Shown: positions 712 through 57,790 of the stretch, piece after piece | How the letters are laid out: each line of letters begins with the position of its first letter | Numbering within the stretch: the stretch's first letter is position 1 | From: Paraphysomonas bandaiensis | Taxonomy: Eukaryota; Protista; Chrysophyceae | DNA: 64,000 bases | Assembly: GCA_965644295.1 (NCBI GenBank) | Contig: CBFFRP010000263.1 | Coordinates: forward strand, 434,001 to 498,000 | Reading direction: 5' to 3' | Made by a program: the position numbers and the translations under genes | Notes under the pieces: model-generated | What the model was told of the DNA's origin: nothing | The model's input: the letters and a program-made list of their open reading frames with translations, nothing else | The model's database searches: none

Positions 712-1018
712 TATTAATTTACGCTTTTAGTTAGTGCAATATTGACTGATTGATATTATAGGAGATATAGTAAGTTTATGATGTTGTAGCCCTGTGAGTT
801 AGGAACCACGTCATTCACCAACATCAACATTCTGTTCTACAAATCATATCTTTAACAGCTACTATATTTTCAGTTTCTTTGTATACTTGTAATAGCTACT
901 CCTATACTGTAGTCATGTATATTCTGTATTTCATTGCTACATAGAATACAGGATAACTACTAGCGATTGACTTTACCAAACTTCAAGTACGCACGTAGGA
1001 GTTGGTTGTAGTTCAATA
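712..1018 (-). repeat. 3' LTR of copia element (TATT...AATA termini)
   Basis: Direct repeat of 5584-5890; adjacent to the PPT. Confidence 0.95.
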
Positions 1019-1066
1019 CTCCCACTCAATGAACATATCAGAATATACTGTGATGAGCAAGTCTAC

Positions 1067-4000
1067 TTAGTGCGATACCATAGTGTGCACATGCTGATAG
1101 TGCAGCTTCTCGGACAAGGCTTTAGTCATCACGTCTGCTGTCATCTCTGCCGTTGGCACATGATTCAGCCTGACGATACAGCCTCCCACTTGCTCTCGAA
1201 TCCAATGATACTTGATCCGAATATGCTTGGAACGTTTATGATTTACCGGGTTCTGAGCTAGATCAATCGCACTCTTGCTGTCCATATTCAAGATTGTTGG
1301 AGACGCATTCTTACTGAGCTCAAATCCACGAATTCCGAGCTCTGTCATCACCCCTCGTATCCATACAATCTCCTGAATTGCAGCATATGCAGCCATATAT
1401 TCAGCTTCCATAGTCGACGTAGCCACTGTTGGCTGCAGTCTGGACTGCCATGCAATTGGAGCACCCCACAGATATACGATATACCCTGTAGTGGATCTGC
1501 ATGTATCCAGATCTCCGGCCCAATCTGCATCAGAGTACACACATAGAGGGTCTTCATCTGTGAAATTAGGAAATATGATACCTTGATCAACTGTATTTTC
1601 TAAATACAATAAAGTATGCAGAGCAGCTTGACATGCAGCGTACGTGGGTCTTGTGGTGAACCGGGAGAGAAGATTTACTGTATATGCCATGTCTGGTCTA
1701 GTATGCACTGCCAAATACATTAAGGCACCAATAACAGATTGATAGGGAAATGCATCAACGTATTCTCTCTGTTTTCGAGTTTCTTCCTCTTTTGCATCCT
1801 TGGACAACTTTAGGCCAGGTGGTAGAGGTGTGGTTGCCTTGCACCGTCTCTTCTTTTCTGACAACAAGTGATTGAATCTGGCCACAACATCTTTAGCATA
1901 TGCAGACTGATGTAACTTAATCTGGCCATTATGACGCTCAATGGTAAGACCTAAATAATGCTTAAGGTCCCCCATATCTTGCATGGCATATTGAGTCTTA
2001 AAGGCGCTGATGACTTCTTCAATATGACGGCTGTCAGAGCTGAGCACAATGATATCATCTACATACACAAGTATCATATGTAGGTTATCATCAGTACCCT
2101 TGAGTACAAATAAACATGGGTCAAGAACACATTGTTTATACCCCATCGCCTTTATACTGTCCTTCAGCATTGAATGCCAATTTCGAGGCGCTTGTTTTAG
2201 GCCATACAAACTCTTCAGAATCTTCAAACAACAGCCTTGTGGAATATCTATTCCTGCAGGTGGAGACATAAACACGTCTTCGTCCAGATCTGCATACGGA
2301 AATGCCGTTTCTACATCGAGTTGACGGAGTTGCAGATTGTATCGCAGAGCCAGTGCCAGTGCTAGCCTAAATGATACACCTTTAGCTACTGGGGAGAATG
2401 TCTCATTATAGTCGACTCCTTGTTCTTGAGTAAACCCTTTCGCCACAAGTCGAACTTTGAACTTCTTAATTTTTCCAAGATGGTCGCGCTTTACTTTAAA
2501 GACCAATTTAGATTTTATGATTTTTCGGTGTTTCGGCCTTCGGACAATCTTCCAGCATGTCCTTCGTTCAAGCTTGTGCACCTCCTTCCTGGTAGCTTCA
2601 ATCCAGTATGTTCTCTGTGGAGTCTTCTTTGCTTCTGCCAGCGTCTGTGGCTCTTTAATTGTGCTGTTGGAGGAATCAAGAAACAATGAGACATCGCCGA
2701 GGACACCAACGTTAACAATGTGCCGTTTTTTTCGAGGTCGTTTTTCAGTTCTGGGATTTCGATCTGCCCCACCTGTTGAAGATGCGCCCCGATTTGAGCG
2801 GTCAGGAGTCCTCTGTTCATTGTCACTGTCATTACAAGTCTGATCCAACTCATTTCGCAAACTATTAAACTTGTCGGTCTGACACTTTGTAGAGTGAGTC
2901 ATCTTTACTACATCTTTGATATGAATTGGAGTTTGCTCCTCGGTAGTATTTCCTTTCATATCTAATCTCCTATATGCAACAATGACTCCTCTTCTCTCTA
3001 TCACTCTGGTGGTAACATAACACAGGTGTCCATCAAGATGTCTGAGGCCCACCAGGTACTGATAGTCATTTACACTCTCTGCTGTTTCTGAGGTGTCGAT
3101 TTGTAGATTATCTATTTCGTCGAAATACTCCTGTGAACGCTCTGGAATTGACTCATCAAACTGTGCATTGACTGCAACAATAATAGCATTCAGGTCTGGA
3201 ATATATATTTGGTGTCCAACAGGTTGTTGACATTGTCCCATATAGTATCCAGGTTTTCCCTTTTCTTTCCACTCTTTGCGGCGCTGCTCCTTCGGCACAA
3301 TAGCCCATGCCTTGCAGCCCCAGATCTTCAAGTCACTCACATCTGGTGCGGTTCCAGTAATATACTCAAAAGGTGAGATGTATCCTTTCGTTGTCTTCGT
3401 AGGTAACCTGTTGATCAGATATACAGCATGCAAGACTGCTTTGAACCAAAATACTGATGGCATGCCACTATCGAGCAATATAGCAAGGGCCATCTCCTTC
3501 ACTGTACGATTAGTGCGTTCCGATAGCGAATTCATTTCGGGTGTGTCACGTGGAGTCCAAGTAACCTGTACAGTCCTTGTGCTGGTGGTTTCACGTAAGT
3601 ACTGCCTGACATGTTGCCCTACTAGTTCTCCTGCGCCATCTGCATGATATCGTCGTAGTTGCAATCCTTCTTTGACAAGTTGGGTCTCTACCATGTCCTT
3701 CATACACTTTAACACTTCACTCCCAGTCTTGTTTTTCAACCCATAAGCCCATACATGTTTTGCATCACTGTGCTTGAATAGTAACACATGTTTGTAGCCT
3801 TCCATCGATGGCGTGTTTAGGACTTCCATCGTATCTGCACTGAGCACCCCTCTCTCCTTTGGGTTGTTGTCTAAGTTCATCAACTGGCGTGGAGTCCTGA
3901 AGTTCTTTCTCGTGAGTTTCGATCGCATGCAGGTATTACATTTGCATATCGTTTTTTTGTGTTTTTTTCTGAAATATTTCTTGTCCAGATTTATTCCATC

Positions 4001-5584
4001 AACTAGGCCTCGGCGGTCGGACTCAGTCAGTTTATCATAGTTGACATGGCCAAGTCTTTTGTGCCATAGAATTCGCTGGTCATCAAACCCCTGCTCCTCA
4101 AGTGCTGCTGAGGATTCTTCTCCAAGCTGAAGTAAGTCTTCGAGTCGAACTGGATATAATCCATTAACACTTCTCTGTCTAATGAGTGTCTTGTTCGTAG
4201 TCTTATTTCGAATGACGACTTCATCATTATCGAACGTCACAACACAACCCCTATCTGTGATGCTCTTCATATCTACGAGGTTCTTACTTGCTTCAGGTGC
4301 GTAGTACACCTTTTTAAAGCTTCCTACATCGCCAACACTGTGTATTGACAGTTTACCTTTGTTCGCTGTGGACATCTGCCTATCAGCGCGCTGAAGGTTG
4401 GTCATGTGGTTTTTGGAGGTAAGGATCATCTTGTTGCACCCGCTGTCTAAATAAATAACATCTGACATGCTCTGTGCTAGATTCACCTCTTCTTCCACAC
4501 ATATCATCGATTCGTATCCCGCTTCATCTTCTGAATCATGTACAGACACTCGCGGTTTCTTCTTGTTCTTGTAGGGTGCCGTTTCCCTTCTAGAGTCTCG
4601 CCCCCGTTTAGAACTGACCACTGCAGCTTTAGCAGTCTTCAAGTGGAAGCAGTCTTTAGTCTGATGGCCTGGGATGTCACATATCTCACACACAGGTAGC
4701 TTTGTTTTGTTATCACCCCTGTTTCTGTGATCTCTATCTTTTCTCTGTGATCTTGTCCCCTTCATCCTCTTTATGACATGCTCTGGAGTCTTGCACTCCC
4801 TAGCAAAGTGGCCAAGTTTCTTGCACTTATTGCATCTGCCCTTTCTCTTGTGCTCTTTCCATTTACTGTCATCCACTGCTTGATTGACACTGTCTTCCCC
4901 TGAATTTTGCAACGCATGCTTGCCGAATGATGTGTTTTCATACCCTTTGATTAGGCTGCTTGCTCTTGCGTATGTCACATCGTTTGCTGTATACAGGCTG
5001 TGTGCTAGTTGGGAATATCTCTTGTCTGTGAGACCTTCCTTTAGTCGAGTGAGCTTGTCGTCTTCCGTGACTTCACGACCTAGATTCTCGAGAATCTTGG
5101 CCTGGGCTTCAACGCTGTCGACGAACTCTGCTCCTGACTGACTTGAGGTAATCTTCATTGAATTGAACTTTGTGACCTCTGCCTGTACTGTATTCTTTTC
5201 AACATTGAGAAATCTCTCTTCCAGTGCCTGTAGTAACCCTTTTGCTGTACTTCCTTCGTAGAGAGCCGCTGTTGTGCCTGCTTTTGGGTGAGCATTGCAC
5301 ACTTCCATCAGGAAGGAGTACGCGGTCTCGTTCCGGGTGTTCCAGAGTTTCTTCGCTTTGCGTAGTCGCTTCTTCTGTGCATCAGTCATATGAGCTCCCG
5401 CTGGGACTGTAGAGTCTAGATCATGAATGTGCCTTGGTTTATCCTTTGAGAGGACAAGATGAGCTCGATTGTGTCTCATGAGGAATGAGGTGAAGAACTT
5501 CTTGAATTTCTTGAAGTTCAGTTCCTCGAAGGGAGGTACCTTTGAGCCTGAGGCGACATTCGTGAAATTTCCATCCGCTGCCAT
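1067..5584 (-). CDS. Copia gag-pol polyprotein (1505 aa)
   Basis: Two CCHC knuckles (CNKCKKLGHFAREC, CEICDIPGHQTKDC), protease YLDSGC, integrase (WHKRLGH..CNTC plus core), RT YVDD, RNase H DADWAG. The PR-IN-RT-RH order is diagnostic of copia. Confidence 0.97.
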   Translation of the reverse strand: MAADGNFTNVASGSKVPPFEELNFKKFKKFFTSFLMRHNRAHLVLSKDKPRHIHDLDSTVPAGAHMTDAQKKRLRKAKKLWNTRNETAYSFLMEVCNAHPKAGTTAALYEGSTAKGLLQALEERFLNVEKNTVQAEVTKFNSMKITSSQSGAEFVDSVEAQAKILENLGREVTEDDKLTRLKEGLTDKRYSQLAHSLYTANDVTYARASSLIKGYENTSFGKHALQNSGEDSVNQAVDDSKWKEHKRKGRCNKCKKLGHFARECKTPEHVIKRMKGTRSQRKDRDHRNRGDNKTKLPVCEICDIPGHQTKDCFHLKTAKAAVVSSKRGRDSRRETAPYKNKKKPRVSVHDSEDEAGYESMICVEEEVNLAQSMSDVIYLDSGCNKMILTSKNHMTNLQRADRQMSTANKGKLSIHSVGDVGSFKKVYYAPEASKNLVDMKSITDRGCVVTFDNDEVVIRNKTTNKTLIRQRSVNGLYPVRLEDLLQLGEESSAALEEQGFDDQRILWHKRLGHVNYDKLTESDRRGLVDGINLDKKYFRKKHKKTICKCNTCMRSKLTRKNFRTPRQLMNLDNNPKERGVLSADTMEVLNTPSMEGYKHVLLFKHSDAKHVWAYGLKNKTGSEVLKCMKDMVETQLVKEGLQLRRYHADGAGELVGQHVRQYLRETTSTRTVQVTWTPRDTPEMNSLSERTNRTVKEMALAILLDSGMPSVFWFKAVLHAVYLINRLPTKTTKGYISPFEYITGTAPDVSDLKIWGCKAWAIVPKEQRRKEWKEKGKPGYYMGQCQQPVGHQIYIPDLNAIIVAVNAQFDESIPERSQEYFDEIDNLQIDTSETAESVNDYQYLVGLRHLDGHLCYVTTRVIERRGVIVAYRRLDMKGNTTEEQTPIHIKDVVKMTHSTKCQTDKFNSLRNELDQTCNDSDNEQRTPDRSNRGASSTGGADRNPRTEKRPRKKRHIVNVGVLGDVSLFLDSSNSTIKEPQTLAEAKKTPQRTYWIEATRKEVHKLERRTCWKIVRRPKHRKIIKSKLVFKVKRDHLGKIKKFKVRLVAKGFTQEQGVDYNETFSPVAKGVSFRLALALALRYNLQLRQLDVETAFPYADLDEDVFMSPPAGIDIPQGCCLKILKSLYGLKQAPRNWHSMLKDSIKAMGYKQCVLDPCLFVLKGTDDNLHMILVYVDDIIVLSSDSRHIEEVISAFKTQYAMQDMGDLKHYLGLTIERHNGQIKLHQSAYAKDVVARFNHLLSEKKRRCKATTPLPPGLKLSKDAKEEETRKQREYVDAFPYQSVIGALMYLAVHTRPDMAYTVNLLSRFTTRPTYAACQAALHTLLYLENTVDQGIIFPNFTDEDPLCVYSDADWAGDLDTCRSTTGYIVYLWGAPIAWQSRLQPTVATSTMEAEYMAAYAAIQEIVWIRGVMTELGIRGFELSKNASPTILNMDSKSAIDLAQNPVNHKRSKHIRIKYHWIREQVGGCIVRLNHVPTAEMTADVMTKALSEKLHYQHVHTMVSH

Positions 5585-5890
5585 ATTAATTTACGCTTTT
5601 AGTTAGTGCAATATTGACTGATTGATATTATAGGAGATATAGTAAGTTTATGATGTTGTAGCCCTGTGAGTTAGGAACCACGTCATTCACCAACATCAAC
5701 ATTCTGTTCTACAAATCATATCTTTAACAGCTACTATATTTTCAGTTTCTTTGTATACTTGTAATAGCTACTCCTATACTGTAGTCATGTATATTCTGTA
5801 TTTCATTGCTACATAGAATACAGGATAACTACTAGCGATTGACTTTACCAAACTTCAAGTACGCACGTAGGAGTTGGTTGTAGTTCAATA
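5584..5890 (-). repeat. 5' LTR of copia element
   Basis: Direct repeat of 712-1018; its last base is the A of the gag ATG. Confidence 0.95.
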
Positions 5891-11567: not shown

Positions 11568-12970
11568 ATGTGCTTACCTACAGGGCATATATTCGGTTCT
11601 ATATACAAACGTTATCCTCATATACAAGATTTAAAACCATTATTTGATTTATTAGGATTCTCTGAATCTTTAATCTCAACACTCTATCGTCAATTTAAGA
11701 GAATCAGATCCACTACTGGATTAGTTGAAGTCTCACGGATATTAGAACATTATGATCTTGATGACAGTGAATTAGGTCGACGTATTTTTTCAATCTTTGA
11801 TTCCAATCCAAAGAGAGTTGACTTTCGGTGTTTCGTCGTATGTCTGTGGAATATATGTACCCTAGATACCGTTGGCTTAGGTATAGTTTCGCGTGAATCA
11901 TTGACCCATTTAACCTTTTCTTCAGTTAATTTTGGCTACGACTTACTGATATATTCACCTGAGGATATTCTTTCTAATGATTCCATTCTTTCTGCTCTTT
12001 ACGGCGACAGACTCTATGACAGATCCACTATGGTCCGGTACGTTTGTGCGTACATCGAATACTCATTTTGTCTTATCCTTGCTGTAGTATCAATCGCATG
12101 GTGGGGTGCCACCCATTAGGGGACCTCGGACGTCAAGAATTTCTTATGTTTTGTGAGCGTTTTCCCTCTTTCTTAACGCCTCTGCATAACATTCAGTGCA
12201 CTCTGCGCGCTCGTGTTCTTGGGACTAAAGTGTGGTCACAATTATCAGATATACGATTCAAGAATGATTGTGACAAGAAGCAGTCTACGCTGCTTGATTT
12301 ATGCTCAACACCAGGTGCTGGAAAGGATTGTAGAGAGGAACCCACTCAGAGACTTGAGAATGAACGTAGCAGTCGTAGAGAGAAAGTTATATCTACATGT
12401 AGAGAGCCGTATAACTTTCGGTTGATTCCCTCCAACCGTGTGAACTTGGGCTCAGACCACAGTAATTATTCAATGTTTTCGTCGAAGGCGTCAGACGATT
12501 CATCAATTAGTTCTCCTGCTTTAGAACCACGTTATCGGACATCCCCTAGCTGTGGTGCAACCGGTAAACCACCGACTGCCCACCCGAATGCTCCACCGAA
12601 CACAACCCGACCTCCACTTCCGAAGACTGTGACCCAAAGTGATTTGAAGGACTCCTCCTCTTTATCCACGAATTCAAAATCTAAGTCACCCTTAAAGTGT
12701 TCTAGTTCCAGGGAGCATACACAGTCTGATATCAACTTCCAAATACTCCAATTGGATCGTTCTGATACAGATGACAGAGATAACCTGCGGAGGATCATGT
12801 CCGATGTCTCCAGTCTAACCGACCCGTCGTTTGCCTCAGTTCCCAGTTCCCCCGAGCAGTATTGTGTTATCCAAATATCGAAGCTGGTGAAGAAGCCACA
12901 TAATATATATTCAAATCCTGCACGAAATAAGGTAATTCCAACAACTTTCGAACCAGATTTTGGGATTTGA
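11568..12970 (+). CDS. EF-hand-like protein with low-complexity Ser/Pro tail (about 2 introns)
   Basis: RIFSIFDSNPKRVDFRCFVVCLWN and EFLMFCERFPSFLTPL resemble degenerate EF hands. GT-AG introns near 11881-11925 and 12037-12087 join the two ORFs. Confidence 0.6.
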
Positions 12971-24088: not shown

Positions 24089-24856
24089 CAGGGATAGGGA
24101 ACAATATATTGATTGGTGGACTGGTCATATATTCCATCAATATTGTTTCTGTTAAAAGCGCTCACAATACTATTGCAATATAACGCAATCAATATTATGA
24201 TATAGAATCTTAACTGTATGGTGCAAAATATACGCCTATGTCTACAAATATCCGGAAAATAAGAAAAAAAACGTACTATATCAATACAGAGGATGATGAA
24301 TCAGAAGTTGGCTATGCAGAAAAAATTCTTCAATCAGCTCAAAAATTTAAGAAACGGGAAGTTGAAATATCTAAGTACAGGTGCACGAGTCATGTAGTAT
24401 GTACTTCCAATACATGTGAACGCCTGTTCAGCGCAGCAAAACTGATTATATCAGTGTTGCGCAATCGTATGCATCCTACTACACTTAATATCTTAATATG
24501 CTGTTGTTACTGAAAGCTAACCGACAGTTGTGGCCGGATGCAAGCATATTTCAATCATTATTGAATGAATATGGTGATGATGATGTCACCGATGATGGCT
24601 CAGAGGATGAGTATGAGGAAACTTTTAATTAGTTAAGAGTAGTGGGCTTGATTATCAAGTGACCTTAGACCTTATAATGGCAAATACTAAAAATGGAAAC
24701 TACGAACTACGGATGTGTTTACTTACTGATTAGTCATATACTAATATATTGCAATATATTGAAATAGTATTGTAAGGCCGGTTTAAAAAATCCATCAATA
24801 CTATTGATGGAACGCTATCTAACAATAGTATTGCAACATATTGTTCCCTATCCCTG
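24089..24856 (+). mobile_element. Non-autonomous hAT DNA transposon (internal deletion derivative)
   Basis: TIR CAGGGATAGGGAACAATAT, 8-bp TSD CTTAATTA, remnant of the hAT dimerisation domain (TSNTCERLFSAAKLIISVLRNRMHP). Confidence 0.95.
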
Positions 24857-25507
24857 CTTAATTATGACATGATGATGAAGTAAGAGTTTACGGCGACCCA
24901 TAGAATGAAGTGGGGGGTTATGCAAAGGATACGAAGACGTTGGAATGAGAAAACAGGATACAACGACATGGAGTGATTGAGATGCAAGCATATGTTGTAA
25001 GCTAATCCTACTATATACTTTCTACTCACTCTGTCATCTCAATTATAGCCGTCTCTATGTCTACATGTTCTTATCACAGCCACCTAAGAGATTCATACCC
25101 TAGACCCTTAAAGCTGCAAGTTCCGAATTGATGTGTACTGCTGCTACCTTGACCTCTATGTACAGCTTAGAATATGGATACATGCATGGATCTGGATATG
25201 TCTTATCAACGGCTGGGCTGGATACATAATTGTCATAAAAATATGGTATTTTCGGATTGAAAAATGTGTGTATAAAAGTCAACTAATAGTGAAAAATCGC
25301 TTCTTTTTGTTTTTATATGTCCATTTTTTCCTTTTTTTCTAGTAACTCTATTCTCCTCACTGGTGCTGTACACAGCAGTCAGCAGTATATACAGCAGTAT
25401 ACTACTTTACTATACTGCTATTCAACATATGAGGTATGCAATTGAAGCACAGGCAGAGTTCATAACTGAGAGAATTAAGGCAGCAAAGACTACTATATGG
25501 TCTATAA

Positions 25508-43621: not shown

Positions 43622-44430
43622 CAGGGATAGGGAGCAATATATTGTAACAATATATTGCAATGTATTGTAAAATATATTGATTGGTGGACTTGTCAAATAT
43701 TCCATCAATATTGTTTCTGTTAAAAGAGCTCACAATACTATTGCAATATATTGCAATGAATATTATGATAGGCATATAAGAGAAGATTCTCAACTGTATG
43801 GTGCAAAATATACGCCTATGTATTCAAATATCCGGAAAATACAGAGGGAGGATGATGAAGCTGAAGTTGGCTATATGCGGAAAAAATTCTTCAATCAGCT
43901 CAAAATCTTAAGAAACGGAAAGCTGAAATATCTAAGTACAGGTGCACGAGTCATGTAGTATGTACTTCCAATTTCCAATACATGTGAACGCCTGTTCAGC
44001 GCAGCAAAACTGATTATATCAGTGTTACGCAATCGTATGCATCATACTACACTTAACATGCTGTTGTTTCTGAAAGCTAAGCGACAGTTGTGGCCGGATG
44101 CAAGCATATTTCAATCAATATTAAATGAGTATGGTGATGATGTCACCGATGATGGCTCAGAGGATGAGTAGGAGGAAACTTTTAATTAGTTAAGAGTAGT
44201 GGGTTTGATTATCAAGTGACCTTAGACCTTATAATGGCAAGTACTAAAAATGGAAACTACGGATGTGTTTACTTACTGATTACTCATATACTAATAATAT
44301 ATTGCAATATATTGTACAATGTATTGCAATATATTGAAATAGTATTGTAGGGCCGGTTTAAAAATCCATCAATACTATTGATGGAACGCTATCTAACAAT
44401 AGTATTGCAATATATTGTTCCCTATCCCTG
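43622..44430 (+). mobile_element. Non-autonomous hAT transposon (second copy), nested in a short dispersed element
   Basis: Same TIRs as 24089-24856; 8-bp TSD AGACAAAC (43614-43621, 44431-44438). Confidence 0.95.
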
Positions 44431-51086: not shown

Positions 51087-51173
51087 CTTATATATATCGC
51101 ACGCTTCAACTATCCCTCCTCAAGTCGGACTGGAGTGGGAACTATTCATACGTGACGAGACAATATTCCTCAC

Positions 51174-51455
51174 TGCTCCATTCTGAGCGCGTACTTAGGT
51201 AGAGCCGGGTGGGGTCGGGTGCCTAACTAATACTTGATTAAGTCCCATATGTTATTTGCTAGCTACCTACTGAAACCAACTAGCTACATCATTATCACAC
51301 GTTTTTTAGCGCTGAATATGCAGTGAGATAATGGGGCAGTGGGGAAGCGCTGAACTAAGCAATGTGTACATAGGTAGAGGTGCGCGGTCGCAACACTCAG
51401 CCGCACCCACTAGATGGTCAAACGGGATGATTAGTTACGCTGTCAATATGGGGCA
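51174..51455 (+). repeat. 5' LTR (282 bp)
   Basis: TGCTCCAT...ATGGGGCA, direct repeat of 56299-56579. Confidence 0.9.
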
Positions 51456-52148
51456 CGGCCCAGCAATACTATTGCAATAGATTAGAATCTTTAATCTGGT
51501 AATCAGTAACTGAACATATCAGTAGATTCCATTATTAGTACTAGTCATTAAGGTCACATACATGTATGCATCGAATATGATATGTTACTATATATTGTCT
51601 ACATTCGATGCATGTGAAACACTTCCTTTCACGGGGGGGGGAGGTTATGAGGAGAAAACCTCACATAGTTTCACATATGCAGGCCATACATATATACAGA
51701 CAACTTTAAGACTTATATATCTGAGATCTTTAGCATGTCCATGTGCTGTCCATGTGCTGTCCATGAGTCTGCAAAGGATCGACACACACAGCAGCATACA
51801 GAGTACAAGATTTCATACAGCAATATCAACTAAAAAATGCAACAAGCCTGTATAAAAACTACATTTTATAGTTAGCGAAAGATCAAAACACAGAAAATGC
51901 ATGATTTTTTTAGCCACATGTTACATACTCTGTATGTGTATGTTTCGTACCTTCGTACCGTTTATGAGTATGTAGCATCCTACATACATACATACATACT
52001 GCTGCATATTATTGTACATTGTACCCACATACAGCAGTATGTATGCATCAGTACGTCGTAGTATGGAGTTTGCTCAAGTCTATAGACATGAACTCATCTC
52101 ACTATCATCTGCTGCCTGTATTGCCACTCTATCAGCCTCATATCAACT

Positions 52149-53828
52149 ATGAATCAGTGTTCATATATGTCGCATATATCTGCTCTTAATGATGATGTTC
52201 TTCGTATCATCATCTCTATGATCCCACACACGGCTGTCCTTCCAGTGATCATGACTTGCAAGAGATTTCACGATATAGTATACACTGATAAGAGGAGAGT
52301 ACAGTCACATGCATCTCACTATTGTATGACCAACTCAATGGTCTCATGGGCTCTGTCTATGGGCTGCCCACACACCCAACTATCATATAGCTGCGCACTA
52401 TACGGCAGACTACAGCAGCTCATACATCTCAAACATACCCTCCTTCACAATAATACAACCTCACAAGAACCACATCACCAATCAGATACACAGAATGCTA
52501 TTGCTATACAGGTCCCTTCATGTTTATGGGGTGAAGATACTTGCGAAGCTGCTGCAAGAGGTGGACACTTGGATATTCTAAAGTGGCTTCGTTCACAGGA
52601 CCCTCCATGTGCATGGGGTGAAGATACTTGCAGTGCTGCTGCAATAGGTGGACACTTGGATGTTCTGAAGTGGCTTCGTTCACAGGATCCTCCATGTCCA
52701 TGGAAATCACGGACTTGCAGTGCCGCTGCAGAGGGTGGACACTTGGATGTTCTGGAGTGGCTTCATTCACAGAACCCTCCATGTCCATGGGATGAATGGA
52801 CTTGCGCTGCTGCTGCAGAGGGTGGGCACTTGGATATTCTGATATGGCTTCGTTCACAGGACCCTCCATGTCTATGGGATGAATGGACTTGCCATTTTGC
52901 TGCAGAGAGTGGACACTTGGATATTCTGAGATGGCTTCGTTCACAGGACCCTCCGTGTCCATGGGATGTATTGACTTGTCATGCTGCTGCAGAGGGTGGA
53001 CACTTGGATGTTCTGAAGTGGGTTCATTCACAGGATCCTCCATGTCCAACATGGGATGACTGGACTTTCGCTACTGCTGCTAGATGTGGTCACTTGGATA
53101 TTCTGATATGGTTTTGTTCACAGGACCCTCAATGTCCATGGGATGAATTGACTTGCGCTGCTGCTGCAGAAGGTGGCCGCTTGAATGTTCTGAAGTGGCT
53201 TCGTTCACAGGATCCTCCATGTCCATGGAATTCGCACACTTGCAGTGCCGCTGCAGAGGGTGGACACTTGGATGTTCTGGAGTGGCTTCATTCACAGGAC
53301 CCTCCATGTCCATGGAATTCAGACACTTGTAGAGCAGCTGCAGCTGGAGGACATATGAATGTTCTGGATTGGCTTCGTTCACAGGACTCCCCATGTCCAT
53401 GGGGTGAAGATATTTGCAGTGCTGCTGCAGAGGGTGGACACTTGGATGTTTTGAAGTGGCTTCGTTCACAAGATCCTCCGTGTCCATGGGATGAAAATAC
53501 TTGCAGTGCTGCTGCTAGACGTGGACAATTGGATGTTCTGAAGTGGCTTCGTTCACAGGACCCTACATGTCCATGGGGTGAAGATACTTGCAGTGCTGCG
53601 GCAAGTGGTGGACACTTGGATGTTCTAAGGTGGCTTCGTTCACAGGACCCTACATGTCCATGGGGTGAAGATACTTGCAGAGCTGCGGCAAGTGGTGGAC
53701 ACTTGGATGTTCTGAAGTGGCTTCGTTCACAGGACCCTCCGTGTCCATGGGATGAATGGACTTGCGCTGCTGCTGCAGAGGGTGGGCACTTGGGTATTGT
53801 GAGGTGGACTGGAAGGTTTATGGTCTAG
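52149..53828 (+). CDS. F-box-like + ankyrin-repeat protein (15 x 29-aa repeats), intronless
   Basis: N-terminal ISALNDDVLRIIISMI..VIMTCKRFHDI (F-box-like); 87-bp repeat encoding PCPWxxxTCxAAAxGGHLDVLKWLRSQDP. Confidence 0.92.
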   Translation: MNQCSYMSHISALNDDVLRIIISMIPHTAVLPVIMTCKRFHDIVYTDKRRVQSHASHYCMTNSMVSWALSMGCPHTQLSYSCALYGRLQQLIHLKHTLLHNNTTSQEPHHQSDTQNAIAIQVPSCLWGEDTCEAAARGGHLDILKWLRSQDPPCAWGEDTCSAAAIGGHLDVLKWLRSQDPPCPWKSRTCSAAAEGGHLDVLEWLHSQNPPCPWDEWTCAAAAEGGHLDILIWLRSQDPPCLWDEWTCHFAAESGHLDILRWLRSQDPPCPWDVLTCHAAAEGGHLDVLKWVHSQDPPCPTWDDWTFATAARCGHLDILIWFCSQDPQCPWDELTCAAAAEGGRLNVLKWLRSQDPPCPWNSHTCSAAAEGGHLDVLEWLHSQDPPCPWNSDTCRAAAAGGHMNVLDWLRSQDSPCPWGEDICSAAAEGGHLDVLKWLRSQDPPCPWDENTCSAAARRGQLDVLKWLRSQDPTCPWGEDTCSAAASGGHLDVLRWLRSQDPTCPWGEDTCRAAASGGHLDVLKWLRSQDPPCPWDEWTCAAAAEGGHLGIVRWTGRFMV

Positions 53829-54128
53829 TTTTCAGGAGGTGTCCGATATTCTATGTGGACAAGAATTAGTAACAATCTCATGGTTATCTTGTATAGTATT
53901 ACATTGCAATATACAGAAATATTTGTAAAAAAGTAACAGAAGTTTATTGAATTTCCAAGAGTGTTTTCAAAAATTGGCTACAAAAAAACTATGCTTGCCT
54001 ATACTTAAGATAGTAGCCTACTTCAGACATTATCCGTCACTATCCTATATTTAGTAATTTGCACCGCTGTCGAACGTTCGTGAACGTATTTCTCAATGTT
54101 GTAATACCTGAACATGCTACGACCGACC

Positions 54129-54200
54129 CAGGGATGGGCAACAATATATTGCAATATTGTAAGATAGCGTTCCATCAATAATATTAATGGAGTTTTTTAA
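54129..54200 (-). mobile_element. Truncated end of a related hAT element
   Basis: CAGGGATGGGCAACAATATATTGCAATA..AGATAGCGTTCCATCAATA matches the reverse complement of the right end of the 43622-44430 element. Confidence 0.7.
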
Positions 54201-56298
54201 TTTAGCGTTGAAGGTGTTTTTAGATTATATTGGTTGTTAATGGCTCCAATTAAGTCGTTGCTACTTGTCCTACAACGTAATTGAAATAATCGAGTACACT
54301 ACGTGGTTAAAATTCTGACATAAATTTTGTGTTGATGTGTTTCGAGTTGCGACATCATTCAGGCTACGAATACGTGTTTTAATTCGATCCTTTTGGCCCG
54401 CATACATAGTTGTAAGTGCCTCCACTTCTCGATACCTTATCTGTTGCAACCCCTCGTTCCGCAAGTGTTCGCAGCATAATACGGTCTTTAAATACCTGTT
54501 CCACCCTTGGATTGGCGGCGACGTATGTCACCCCCCTATTTGCCCGGTAGGCTGCTTTGAACTAATTGAGGAAGTTATCAAAATAATTCTAACGGAACTA
54601 GATCTCTCCGGTTGGTGTTTTCAAAATCATGCTTAAATTTTGGAAACACCTGATTCACAAATGTTATGTCGTCCGTACCTATACTATCAATGATTCGAGA
54701 AAGGGCCGTGGCGTTCACAATTTGTTTCATATTATCATAAAAAAGTTGACGCATTTTGTTTATGTTTTTTGTCATATAAGAATGTCTGATTACTACATGA
54801 GAACGGTTGTGTATAGAAACTAGTTTTACATCTATAGACTAACTAATAACTGGACTTGCAATATACTATTAGTGCTGAGGCAACCGTCTCGGGACTGCTT
54901 GTGCATCGCTGCGAGCACCATGGTGCAACCGTCCCTCTTGTATTGAGGTTAATCGGGGGGTCTACCTTTGGGCAATGTGTCTGACGGGCCTGTGCCACGG
55001 ATTATGTGAGGAGTGGATAGGGCGAGATGTAGATGAGAGTGTAAGTCGATGGTGGAGATGGTGCTGGTTGTCGAGGTGGGGTTTCGGCCACAAGTAAGGA
55101 TGAGTTGTTTCCGGAGTGGTTGCGCTTGCCTCTGTGTCTGGTTCGGACTCTTGAAGAGGATATAATTCTAGAGGTGGTTGTCGCCTGAAGTAGCTGGAGT
55201 ATTTTGGTGTCGGGTGAGTATCCTGGGACTGGCGTTGCTGTGAGTGTGTCGGTGTTGTGACCGGTGTTACTGGAGTTGTGTCTGCGTTGTGGTGTCTGAG
55301 TCCCCTATTTCGAAGCATACGGGCCCTCCGTTATATAGGGGAAGCAGAATACATGCGGCTTTTGCTAGTTAAGGCAGTGTGAAACCAGGGATGGGGGAGC
55401 GTGCGTGCGCGAAGTTTGTCAAGCTTACTGTGGTGTGCTTGGAGAACATCTTCACGTATGTGAATGATGTCACGGTGCTCTATATATGCGAAAGCGATCC
55501 ATTCTGACAAAATGGTCACTCACCCGAATTCACAACGTATTCACTTCACTATTCAATAATGCAGAACAAAACGAAATCATACTGCACAAACTATACTCCG
55601 GCTTTTTCTAGTGCTCTACTAGTAGAAAAAAGATGATCCGCAACGACGTAAATCCACCACCCGCGCTACGCCCACACCTACGCATACACAGCGACGTAGA
55701 AGGTAACGAGATACCTGTGTTGCGATTACCACTCATTCCCAATAAACGCGTCTTTGGGGTTCTTTTTGAAGGAACGGAACAGGGAATAAAACGAATTCGA
55801 GACGAGAAACATGCGTGTGAGTGTCAAATACATCTTGACCGTCAAAAATCGATCTCAAACGCGTGAAATCATTCGGGAATGTCACATCGGATTGATACAT
55901 GATGGTGTTGGTGAGTGCGGGTGGGCTTTGGTGGGGCGGGTTGTATAACTATTGATGAGTGAGAATGAGCTCAACATTTTTTTGTTATTTCATATGGGGT
56001 CAGAAAGACCGATTCTGATTAGTGGAAAAAATCCACTCAAAATTTAAACCAATTTAAATATTTTTAAATTTTTATGTGTGTTTTTTCGGGGTAACCCTTT
56101 TGGGTATTCAATTTTGTAGGGCACAGGCATCAAATATATTATATATATATTTAGTTCCGACGCACTAATGATGATGTGTGACCAGGGCCACGATGATGAC
56201 TTAGAGTTATGTGCGATACTCTCCTTAGTCAACGTGACCGAGTTGGTCACACAAGGAAACACTGTACTACAATTGTATTTAGGAATACGGAGGAGGGG

Positions 56299-56579
56299 TG
56301 CTCCATTCTGAGCGCGTACTTAGGTAGAGCCGGGTGGGGTCGGGTGCCTAACTAATACTTGATTAAGTCCCATATGTTATTTGCTAGCTACCTACTGAAA
56401 CCAACTAGCTACATCATTATCACACGTTTTTTAGCGCTGAATATGCAGTGAGATAATGGGGCAGTGGGGAAGCGCTGAACTAAGCAATGTGTACATAGAT
56501 AGAGGTGCGCGGTCGCAACACTCAGCCGCACGCACTAGATGGTCAAACGGGGTGATAGTTACGCTGTCAATATGGGGCA
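56299..56579 (+). repeat. 3' LTR (281 bp)
   Basis: Preceded by the PPT and followed by TSD CTCAC. Confidence 0.9.
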
Positions 56580-56919
56580 CTCACTTCATTGAAAAGTGAG
56601 AAAATTTATAGTCGTGGTTTGTAAGGGGCAACTTGGTAAACGACTGTAATAGTACTTAAAGTATACACACTAACTCTTCTCATATTTACCCAACAATATT
56701 ACATTGATGCGAGTAGATATAGAGATATAGATATTACTACTTTCTTGCAAAAGCACGGAACCTTTCTACCTTAAAATGCTAGAAAAATAAAGATTTGTCC
56801 CGGAATGAGTGCTGAACTAGTTCCTATCTAAAAACTACTGTACACTGCACAATATCTGAAAAGAGGAGCTATATGAGTTATTCTACTTTACAAGTTATTA
56901 TGATTTCTTATTATCACTT

Positions 56920-57501: not shown

Positions 57502-57595
57502 GTTCTTTGATATGAAATTAAGTTGTATTGAATTGTTTGGTATAGATGTGATATGCAAGTGTGATTATGAGTTTAATGGAGATGCACTGCACTGT

Positions 57596-57790
57596 GTATG
57601 TATGTATGTATGTATGTATGTATGTATGTATGTATGTATGTATGTATGTATGTATGTATGTATGTATGTATGTATGTATGTATGTATGTATGTATGTATG
57701 TATGTATGTATGTATGTATGTATGTATGTATGTATGTATGTATGTATGTATGTATGTATGTATGTATGTATGTATGTATGAATGTATGCA
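57596..57790. repeat. (TATG)n microsatellite, about 46 units
   Basis: Seen directly. Confidence 0.98.

Follow-up and report, generated by a model that had tools for sequence, protein, structure and literature searches.

In plants, LTR elements are well known to have captured host sequence, mostly in the form of gene fragments. Acutely transforming retroviruses have captured oncogenes as spliced, cDNA-like sequence, which is then expressed from the LTR. To our knowledge, the Polinton-like viruses and virophages described so far have inverted-repeat ends or circular maps (PMC7805220). Chrysophytes are reported as hosts of such viruses, and Polintons, Polinton-like viruses and endogenous virophages of protists are the subject of PMC7805220, PMC10945749 and PMC12220804. 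The element Bs1, as summarized in a review, contains gene fragments and no full-length ORF.

The window analyzed here is a stretch of 64,000 nucleotides from Paraphysomonas bandaiensis, in which positions 51174-56579 form a single-copy, gag/pol-less mobile-element shell that is bounded by LTRs and was inserted as one unit (Table 1). A sequence-only reading of the same DNA had described two TG...CA repeats of about 282 bp, with some three substitutions and one indel between them. The measured lengths are 282 and 281 bp, and the LTRs are 98.6% identical, with three substitutions and a single-base indel. The CTCAC target site duplication (TSD) was also read where that account had placed it, at the outer ends only, as was the polypurine tract (PPT), directly before the right repeat. 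The PPT consensus of the LTR family is GGGTGGGGGG, and its position is kept in C430 and C254. The interval has three structural features of an LTR retrotransposon, in that it combines TG..CA direct repeats with a 5-bp TSD (4-6 bp being the criterion) and a PPT. Insertion as one unit follows from the near identity of the LTRs, the perfect TSD restricted to the outer ends and the PPT in its proper place, and the TSD shows that the interval entered the CTCAC site once, as a single linear DNA. The proposal of a single LTR-bounded unit that encloses an intact, sense-strand F-box-like/ankyrin gene is thus upheld. Immediately 3' of the left LTR, the leader of the family (CCCCCCATCCCC..., present in L008, L015 and L018 and at about 15 loci) is missing, as is any TGG-type tRNA site, and half of a repeat termed X stands there instead. 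Misassembly had been named as a possible objection. The left-LTR/interior and right-LTR/flank junctions are both spanned by exact unitigs of short reads, drawn from three DNA data sets, which vouches for two of the four junctions.

Table 1. Features of the LTR-bounded element, in window coordinates
Feature	Position	Strand	Basis
TSD, left copy (CTCAC)	51169-51173	.	Read from sequence; identical to 56580-56584
Left LTR, 282 bp, TG...CA	51174-51455	+	Pairwise comparison with right LTR
XR, right half of hairpin-rich dispersed repeat X	51456-51560	+	Alignment and BLAST to intact X copies; abuts left LTR at leader position
rep2 fragment, another dispersed repeat	51565-51702	+	About 30 copies at 74-83% identity
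(TACA)n remnant	51981-52001	+	Long (TACA)n tracts upstream of C285, C442, C148 and C260 paralogues
Promoter-proximal/5'UTR block, family-conserved	52083-52148	+	Common to paralogues outside LTR pairs
Intact ORF, 559 aa; N-terminal F-box-like motif, then about 14 ankyrin-type repeats of 29 aa	52149-53828	+	Pfam; paralogue alignment
3'UTR and 3' flank of the gene	53829-54128	+	First 67 bp common to many paralogues; 53896-54184 to C185
XL, left half of repeat X	54129-54200	+	Ends at the X position where XR begins
Cargo-family interior	54196-54771	+	87-90% identity to C603:11268-11412 and 11723-12174
repB, unrelated high-copy repeat	54773-55477	+	853 first-look candidates, best 91% identical; L034 comparison
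Adenain-type protease gene remnant, last 41 codons	55483-55611	+	90% aa identity to residues 103-143 of C430 ORF
Rest of 3' module and short tandem-repeat region	55612-56288	+	Comparison with C430 and C77
PPT GGAGGAGGGG, G-rich	56289-56298	+	Adjoins right LTR; same place in C430 and C254
Right LTR, 281 bp	56299-56579	+	Pairwise comparison with left LTR
TSD, right copy (CTCAC)	56580-56584	.	Read from sequence

The 559-aa reading frame is the sole long ORF of the element and lies in sense orientation to the LTRs, in agreement with the sequence-only reading. Its identification as an F-box plus ankyrin gene is firm in the ankyrin part, with Pfam matches above the gathering score to Ank_4 (134.6 bits, E 7e-40, cut-off 22.7) and Ank_2 (98.6 bits), and sub-threshold in the F-box part, where PF00646 scores 15.6 bits (E 0.015) against a cut-off of 20.5 and does about as well in two paralogues. 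Eleven paralogues share the motif LNDDVLRxIISMIP...TCKRF without variation. A PDB profile search for an F-box fold in the protein gave no match, and its AlphaFold model has a pLDDT of 48, which is too low to be used for this purpose. The ankyrin type had been likened to that of giant viruses and algae, and in a language-model atlas it does adjoin clusters labeled as giant virus and green alga, a lead rather than an alignment. The F-box/ankyrin family has about 88 copies, the closest of which is about 93% identical in nucleotide sequence and 87-89% in amino acid sequence. In a run that is probably RNA, its label being presumed, exact unitigs of the ORF were found at 52996-53145 and 53597-53713, with a depth of 73-213 in the ORF unitigs versus 0-2.5 in unique non-coding interior. 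The gene appears to be transcribed from its own promoter, and its product probably works like that of its paralogues, as a candidate SCF substrate adaptor. Given that the promoter block, the (TACA)n tract and the 3' flank are common to paralogues outside LTR pairs, the left 2.74 kb is a native gene segment, an ordinary genomic F-box-like/mini-ankyrin copy with its own promoter region and UTRs.

This segment stands in place of the leader and primer site of the LTR family, and the interior of the element is a chimera of 2.74 kb of gene segment on the left and 2.4 kb of family remnant on the right. The interior had been called LARD-like, a label that does not suit a chimera without a conserved non-coding core, in which half of an unrelated repeat has replaced the leader. 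The two halves of X abut at one X position but in permuted order, so that the segment opens with the right half and closes with the left. The break falls between predicted hairpins (z -3.7), and a 12-bp palindrome at 51469-51480 is part of X, a repeat that flanks F-box/ankyrin genes. Short overlaps are present at both junctions of the segment, with the end of XL overlapping the family interior by 5 bp.

The right 2.4 kb, which is common to about 10 loci at 82-90% identity, is what deletions have left of a member of a family of cargo elements, 5-13 kb long, that are bounded by LTRs and lack gag and pol. Compared with L034, about 4.6 kb of family interior is missing at the position of repB, including the first 102 codons of the protease, and a 1-kb stretch with an F5/8 type C gene, present in C430 and C77, has been deleted within 55612-56288. 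The portion at 55478-56298 matches about 10 loci. The conserved 3' module of the family contains short tandem repeats, a G-rich purine tract and two genes, one for an adenain protease of the Polinton-like virus type and one for a discoidin-domain protein. In C430 this module has an intact 144-aa ORF, for which the closest atlas clusters are Peptidase_C5 and Preplasmiviricota, and 35%-identical homologues of this ORF lie 4.4-6.4 kb from stand-alone integrase ORFs of 349-352 aa. A stand-alone rve ORF of 431 aa lies, by coordinates, within the 13-kb C69 pair and its C603 sibling. In the parts of the family interior that were read, outside the 12-13-kb members (C430 left half, C69, C603), a protease homologue was seen, and no capsid, ATPase or polymerase gene. 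Cargo of the Polinton-like virus type had no place in the sequence-only account.

The repeat that bounds the element is a genuine LTR family, dispersed over at least 165 copies (165 motif matches versus 0 in a reversed control; 231 first-look candidates in the initial genome search). Perfect 5-bp TSDs flank 8 of 21 other scorable copies from the 28 read in all, and these eight are solo copies. At least 15 contigs have such LTRs in same-strand pairs with a spacing of 2-13 kb. The closest other copy is 90% identical to the window pair, and none exceeds this value, so the likeness of the two window LTRs puts the pair far beyond chance. F-box genes have about 7 times as many LTR copies in their vicinity as expected, with 11 of 110 other LTRs within 5 kb versus 1.55 by expectation. 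A genome-wide search with the LTR, as had been suggested, turned up two other same-strand pairs that enclose different F-box/ankyrin genes, in sense orientation in C360 and antisense in C430. The genes in the C360, C430 and window pairs are not each other's closest relatives, which speaks against shared descent of the cargo. With this enrichment and with unrelated F-box members inside the C360 and C430 pairs, capture of F-box/ankyrin genes by LTR pairs looks recurrent.

The lack of any gag or pol remnant was borne out within 51101-56700, where tblastn gave no match to a gag-like ORF, a fragment of a Copia RT or a Copia polyprotein of 1505 aa encoded in the window, and a Pfam scan of interior ORFs gave no retroelement domain. 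Neither gag nor pol was found in any other LTR pair read. The autonomous partner that had been postulated to mobilize the element in trans, an RT-bearing element with a shared LTR, was not found among the best candidates listed. An RT beside the L030 LTR was rejected in this role, given that it is part of a separate, young Copia family for which that LTR does not form the boundary. The element is suggested to be retro-mobile by its anatomy alone. Genome searches gave neither a sibling nor a parent, and the interior as a whole is single-copy; with the closest LTR at 90% and the closest paralogue at about 93%, the idea that such elements amplify F-box/ankyrin genes finds no backing here.

The explanation that fits best, and to which about even credence can be given as a whole, is that a chimeric LTR element without gag and pol acquired the gene segment by a template switch, in a one-off, dead-end transduction. 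A member of the family would have been undergoing copying, most probably by reverse transcription supplied in trans, when synthesis may have jumped to another template in the single-stranded stretch that links the X hairpins. The switch would have exchanged the 5' interior, leader and primer site included, for a gene segment cut out at one point of the hairpin-rich repeat X, and the chimera would then have integrated at CTCAC. The sense orientation of the gene is what capture at the RNA level requires. Without leader, sibling, parent or partner, the product would be a dead end rather than an amplifier. A recent copy should have a near-identical source, and none was found, so either the source has been lost or is unassembled, or the LTRs were gene-converted and the element is old. 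It counts against a template switch that the segment includes a promoter and an upstream microsatellite, and was therefore not copied from a normal mRNA, and that end joining in situ, after DNA breaks at the X palindromes, could give the same junctions. If so, a normal family member would have stood at CTCAC, and a later double-strand break in its 5' interior would have been repaired with a 2.74-kb DNA fragment, either joined in or copied, the ends of which arose where two X repeats on either side of an F-box gene broke at their palindromes, or where a one-X circle was opened. The gene would then never have been moved by the LTR element. Such a capture in situ is possible but doubtful. Both ends of the insert map to one point between the X hairpins, as palindrome-directed breaks predict, and the short overlaps, the promoter and microsatellite and the lack of sibling or parent agree with it, as does the antisense F-box gene in C430, which capture of RNA does not predict. 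However, the break must have hit the LTR exactly at its last base, several kb must have been deleted besides the insertion, a lost parent of the divergent LTR subfamily is needed as well, and the sense orientation of the gene becomes a coincidence.

The adenain protease of Preplasmiviricota type in the conserved family interior, the 431-aa rve ORF in the C69 pair and its C603 sibling and the failure to find RT in any LTR pair bring up an improbable third account. Here, the "LTRs" would be direct terminal repeats of a DNA element derived from Polinton-like viruses, inserted by an rve-type integrase without reverse transcription, and the window copy would be a derivative that has decayed and has recombined with an F-box/ankyrin locus of the host. 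In its broadest form, which is a long shot, the 283-bp "LTR" family would bound integrated genomes and relics of a Polinton-like virus-derived lineage that uses retrovirus-style direct repeats (TG..CA, 5-bp TSD) for insertion by integrase and, like giant viruses, repeatedly acquires F-box/ankyrin ubiquitin-ligase adaptors from the host; the window element would be a stripped derivative that keeps only termini, protease stub and adaptor gene. The G-rich purine tract that directly adjoins the 3' repeat on its inner side, and the conserved family leader in the matching place beside the 5' repeat, argue against a DNA element, many solo repeats with 5-bp TSDs give the classic picture of an LTR retrotransposon, and the repeats here are direct, in contrast to the inverted repeats or circles of described relatives. 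LTRs of this type are often located within, or next to, X repeats flanking F-box genes (L032 and L047; L041 with a different LTR), and a TSD is absent in all six single LTRs that adjoin F-box genes, as if two independent insertions or solo LTRs had come by chance to surround a resident gene. Such chance, or an assembly artefact, is nonetheless very unlikely, given that the window LTRs are 98.6% alike while no other copy exceeds 90% identity to them, the 5-bp duplication is confined to the outer ends, the purine tract and 3' module lie on the side expected, and exact unitigs bridge half of the junctions.

In short, the element is best read as an LTR-mediated gene capture, and it looks like a one-off pick-up by a cargo-carrying LTR family rather than a gene-multiplying vehicle. 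In a heterotrophic marine protist, an LTR shell here encloses a complete, self-promoted and apparently expressed member of the fast-diversifying F-box/ankyrin family. The mechanism suggested by its junctions is a concrete one, in which a hairpin-rich repeat beside such genes was the site either of breaks or of template switches. For ongoing amplification the present copy offers no evidence, and the direct impact is modest. The wider point is a gag/pol-less, LTR-bounded family with a conserved gene module of the Polinton-like virus type. If elements of this family move, the line between retroelement and integrated DNA virus is blurred, and genes for recognition modules have a possible route of relocation.

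The element resembles LARDs and TRIMs in its LTRs, TSD and purine tract, its lack of gag and pol and its presumed mobilization in trans. Those elements have a conserved non-coding core in many near-identical copies, several with a partner that shares LTR, PBS and PPT, whereas the window interior is a single-copy chimera, the family interiors are variable and protein-coding, no partner was found, and only the 3' 2.4 kb recurs, at about 10 loci. With Polinton-like viruses the family shares the adenain-type protease of its conserved module and, in larger members, the stand-alone rve integrase. Polintons, Polinton-like viruses and virophages have capsid, packaging ATPase and polymerase genes, the last protein-primed in Polintons, and inverted repeats or circles; the family described here ends in direct TG..CA repeats with a purine tract, and no capsid or polymerase gene was seen in the parts of its interiors that were read. 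As in acutely transforming retroviruses, a replication-defective LTR element has here exchanged sequence of its own for host coding sequence, through two non-homologous junctions, but the segment includes promoter and flanks, and expression of the gene seems to start from its own promoter. The likeness to Bs1 is that an element without complete coding capacity of its own has host sequence enclosed by its two LTRs, with read-through and abnormal template switching during reverse transcription as the proposed routes. Bs1 has a plant host, in contrast to the heterotrophic stramenopile protist studied here, in which the element encloses a whole gene with promoter and UTRs that is apparently expressed and replaces the primer-site region.

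The element under study begins and ends with direct repeats (window 51174-51455 and 56299-56579) that, by repeat search and pairwise alignment, are three substitutions and one 1-base indel apart, and both start with TG and end with CA. CTCAC lies immediately outside each end (51169-73 and 56580-84) and is absent from the inner edges, and GGAGGAGGGG directly precedes the right LTR. The paired repeats, the 5-bp target-site duplication (TSD) at the outer ends only and the polypurine tract described in the sequence-only reading are all confirmed, as is its failure to find gag or pol in the interior, given that tblastn within the element gave zero matches for the 1505-aa polyprotein of a Copia in the same window, a reverse transcriptase (RT) fragment, also from Copia, and a gag-like ORF. 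Since the TSD is outermost and the LTRs are so similar to each other, the whole chimera can be said to have entered the site as a single linear DNA. The sole long ORF (52149-53828, plus strand) encodes a 559-aa protein that matches ankyrin models strongly in Pfam. The open frame and the ankyrin repeats of the gene reported earlier are therefore upheld, but its F-box matches at E 0.015, under the curated cut-off. A PDB profile search with the F-box region gave no result and its AlphaFold model has a pLDDT of 48, and the F-box is a motif-level assignment only. A single sub-threshold miRNA-like match in an Rfam scan is located in a microsatellite and was taken as chance.

The two LTRs belong to a dispersed family, as a genome-wide search proposed in the sequence-only reading made clear. 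A first look at the 62.5-Mb assembly gave 231 candidates for the 283-bp repeat, and a conserved 24-mer from it occurs at 165 places, compared with 0 for the reversed control. Homology ends exactly at the repeat boundaries in 28 other copies read with 1.5-kb flanks; perfect 5-bp duplications flank 8 of the 21 that could be scored (one more matches at 4/5), and the copies with duplications behave as solo LTRs. Every other copy reaches at most 90% identity to the element's LTRs, so these two belong together. By its anatomy, with TG...CA ends, a 5-bp TSD, a purine tract, a leader and many solo LTRs, this is an LTR retroelement family; its interiors carry non-retroviral genes, and we found no gag or pol with the studied LTR. 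No viral or metagenome contig contains the 24-mer, and protease-based locus searches of viral and metagenome collections gave no result. Two same-strand LTR pairs, on contigs C426 (locus L038:3264-7438) and C362 (L039:4352-6752), have the inverse flank pattern, with an identical 5 bp at the inner edges, after the first LTR and before the second (TATGC in L038, GTTAT in L039), and a leader after the second LTR that is canonical in L038 and a shorter variant in L039. Such a pattern would be expected from a tandem duplication that includes an element, or if the target of insertion was circular or tandem. A piece of the family leader recurs three times on C365 (6532, 10211 and 13852; coordinates only) at intervals of about 3.66 kb, which indicates that parts of the elements of this family occur in tandem arrays.

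The left part of the interior (51456-54200) is an ordinary gene of the F-box-like/ankyrin family with its own surroundings. A 66-bp conserved block precedes the ATG, a (TACA)n remnant lies further upstream, and the 3' flank is common to paralogues outside LTR pairs. Long (TGTA)n/(TACA)n tracts are common in this genome, typically 100-600 bp upstream of F-box/ankyrin genes (as in L035, L049, L050 and L036, with another tract at window 57590-57790), and yield long spurious ORFs. The gene segment is bounded by two halves of X, a repeat of about 450 bp that is dispersed and rich in hairpins: the right half (51456-51560) directly follows the left LTR, and the left half (54129-54200) follows the gene. 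The halves meet at one position of X, in permuted order, and the break falls in the linker between two predicted hairpins (X fold z -3.7). The 75-bp core of X has 422 first-look candidates. X is frequently found beside F-box/ankyrin genes, with LTRs bearing TGCCCCAT...ATGGGGCA termini in or adjoining it, and may be a preferred integration target. The element lacks the normal family leader (CCCCCCATCCCC..., about 15 loci). A 12-bp palindrome after the 5' LTR was rejected as a primer site, as it belongs to X and not to the studied LTR family.

Copies of repeat X, and pairs of adenain-like protease and rve ORFs (protease/rve positions)
Feature	Location	Strand	Basis
X copy (intact)	window 24405-24859	-	
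X copy (intact)	window 43958-44430	-	
X copy (intact)	L026:408-861		
X copy (intact)	L032:3209-3568		
X copy (intact)	L043:6892-7075		
Adenain-like protease / rve ORF pair	C298:200619/207058	same strand	coordinates only
Adenain-like protease / rve ORF pair	C461:25431/31669	same strand	coordinates only
Adenain-like protease / rve ORF pair	C297:1056212/1060629	same strand	coordinates only
Adenain-like protease / rve ORF pair	C288:638877/643301	same strand	coordinates only

The right part derives from the family interior. Its last segment (55478-56298) is common to about 10 loci at 82-87% identity, among them C603, which also matches 54196-54771 at 87-90% identity (C603:11268-11412 and 11723-12174). 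In the C430 copy (L034), the 3' module includes an intact 144-aa ORF, an F5/8 type C ORF (191 aa, opposite strand to the 144-aa ORF, Pfam E 3e-9), short tandem repeats, GGGTGGGGGG and the LTR. The 144-aa ORF has no match in Pfam or PHROGs; among language-model clusters, those nearest to it are Peptidase_C5 (adenain), labelled Preplasmiviricota. The genome also has homologues of 166-171 aa (35% identity), several of which lie 4.4-6.4 kb from stand-alone rve ORFs of 349-352 aa, and the four pairs in the table are probably endogenous Polinton-like elements. The element retains just the last 41 codons of the family protease gene; about 4.6 kb of family interior is missing, with a copy of an unrelated high-copy repeat (54773-55477) in its place, and the 1-kb discoidin stretch of the 3' module is deleted as well. 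A 13-kb LTR-bounded element at C69:333507-346690 and its sibling copy at C603:6522-17164 each carry the protease module and, on the opposite strand, a stand-alone 431-aa rve (integrase) ORF. For C603, C69, C77, C58 and the left half of the C430 element, the analysis used coordinates only.

The unique parts of the element are single-copy in the genome. A search for a sibling or parent found none. The closest LTRs are those of C186 and C66, with 90% identity at best, and the paralogue nearest to the element's gene, on C185, shares 93% identity over 294 nt. Together with the loss of the leader, the lack of a sibling or parent argues against ongoing amplification, and the amplification proposed earlier is not supported. 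Because no parent was found, either the source has been lost or the element's LTRs have been homogenised by gene conversion. Nor was an autonomous partner sharing the LTR, as had been suggested, recovered. Among the best candidates listed, a search of the rve family found within LTR pairs only the stand-alone 431-aa ORF (C69, also C603) and a 1614-aa polyprotein inside the C169 pair, which is probably a nested element, and no listed integrase adjoins any of the roughly 15 loci with the canonical leader. An RVT_2 ORF beside the LTR of L030 was rejected, as it is 99% identical to a different Copia family with at least 25 intact copies (open frames of 1583-1595 aa) that the studied LTR does not flank; that identity marks the family as very young. 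The L030 copy (L030:2-739, minus strand; C249:59346-60083) is internally deleted, fusing the gag N-terminus to the RT C-terminus, and a solo LTR of the studied family ends 2 bp ahead of its start. Another Copia, apparently intact, lies at window 712-5883 (minus strand; 1505-aa polyprotein ORF with RVT_2-type RT, 1067-5584); its flanking 300-bp repeats share 100% identity and bear no relation to the studied LTR, and it looks very young.

F-box genes recur near this LTR family. The genome has about 88 copies of the N-terminal domain of the element's gene, most of them open, and of the 110 other LTR copies whose positions are known, 11 have an F-box gene within 5 kb, compared with 1.55 expected under a crude uniform-placement null. 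Two more same-strand pairs enclose genes of the family, C360 (sense; diverged LTRs, flanks CTATT/CTACT) and C430 (antisense), whereas about 0.12 would be expected by hand calculation from the roughly 93 kb inside all pairs with the window left out. The three cargo genes are not mutually closest relatives, so the associations are independent. A TSD is found in 0 of 6 single LTRs beside F-box genes versus 8 of 15 elsewhere (P 0.03). Repeat X probably underlies part of the association. LTRs lie inside or adjoin X in L032 (twice) and L047. Downstream of the nearest F-box paralogue, a 251-bp solo LTR of another family (C185:112613-112863; L041:7614-7864), with only its 8-bp termini in common with the studied LTR, sits in X about a dozen bases from the position of the element's break.

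With only one break point in X, both junctions seem to have formed at one structural feature. Template switching during the copying of co-packaged RNAs could have produced both, and the sense orientation of the gene makes this the preferred reading. The main rival, DNA breaks at the X palindromes followed by joining in situ, would explain the junctions equally well, and sequence alone cannot tell the two apart. Unitigs of three DNA data sets span the left-LTR/interior and right-LTR/flank junctions with zero mismatches. All carry the element, so that the predicted empty site with a single CTCAC was not seen in them, and no paralogous empty site was found among the genome loci read. In one run, tentatively taken as RNA, depths of exact unitigs are 73-213 within the ORF, against 0-2.5 in the unique non-coding interior; this agrees with the gene being transcribed from its own promoter and lends no support to an abundant LTR-to-LTR transcript.

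In plants, it is established that LTR retrotransposons capture host sequence, by read-through or by abnormal template switching (Bs1, rice, sorghum; review PMC13317346), and the kind of event is therefore already known. The element described here differs in that it holds a whole gene with its own promoter, has lost its primer site and resides in a protist, and in that the conserved interior of its family is a module of genes of Polinton-like-virus type. Polinton-like viruses are reported to have inverted repeats at their ends or to map as circles, and their capsid genes have been found in Paraphysomonas transcriptomes (PMC7805220).
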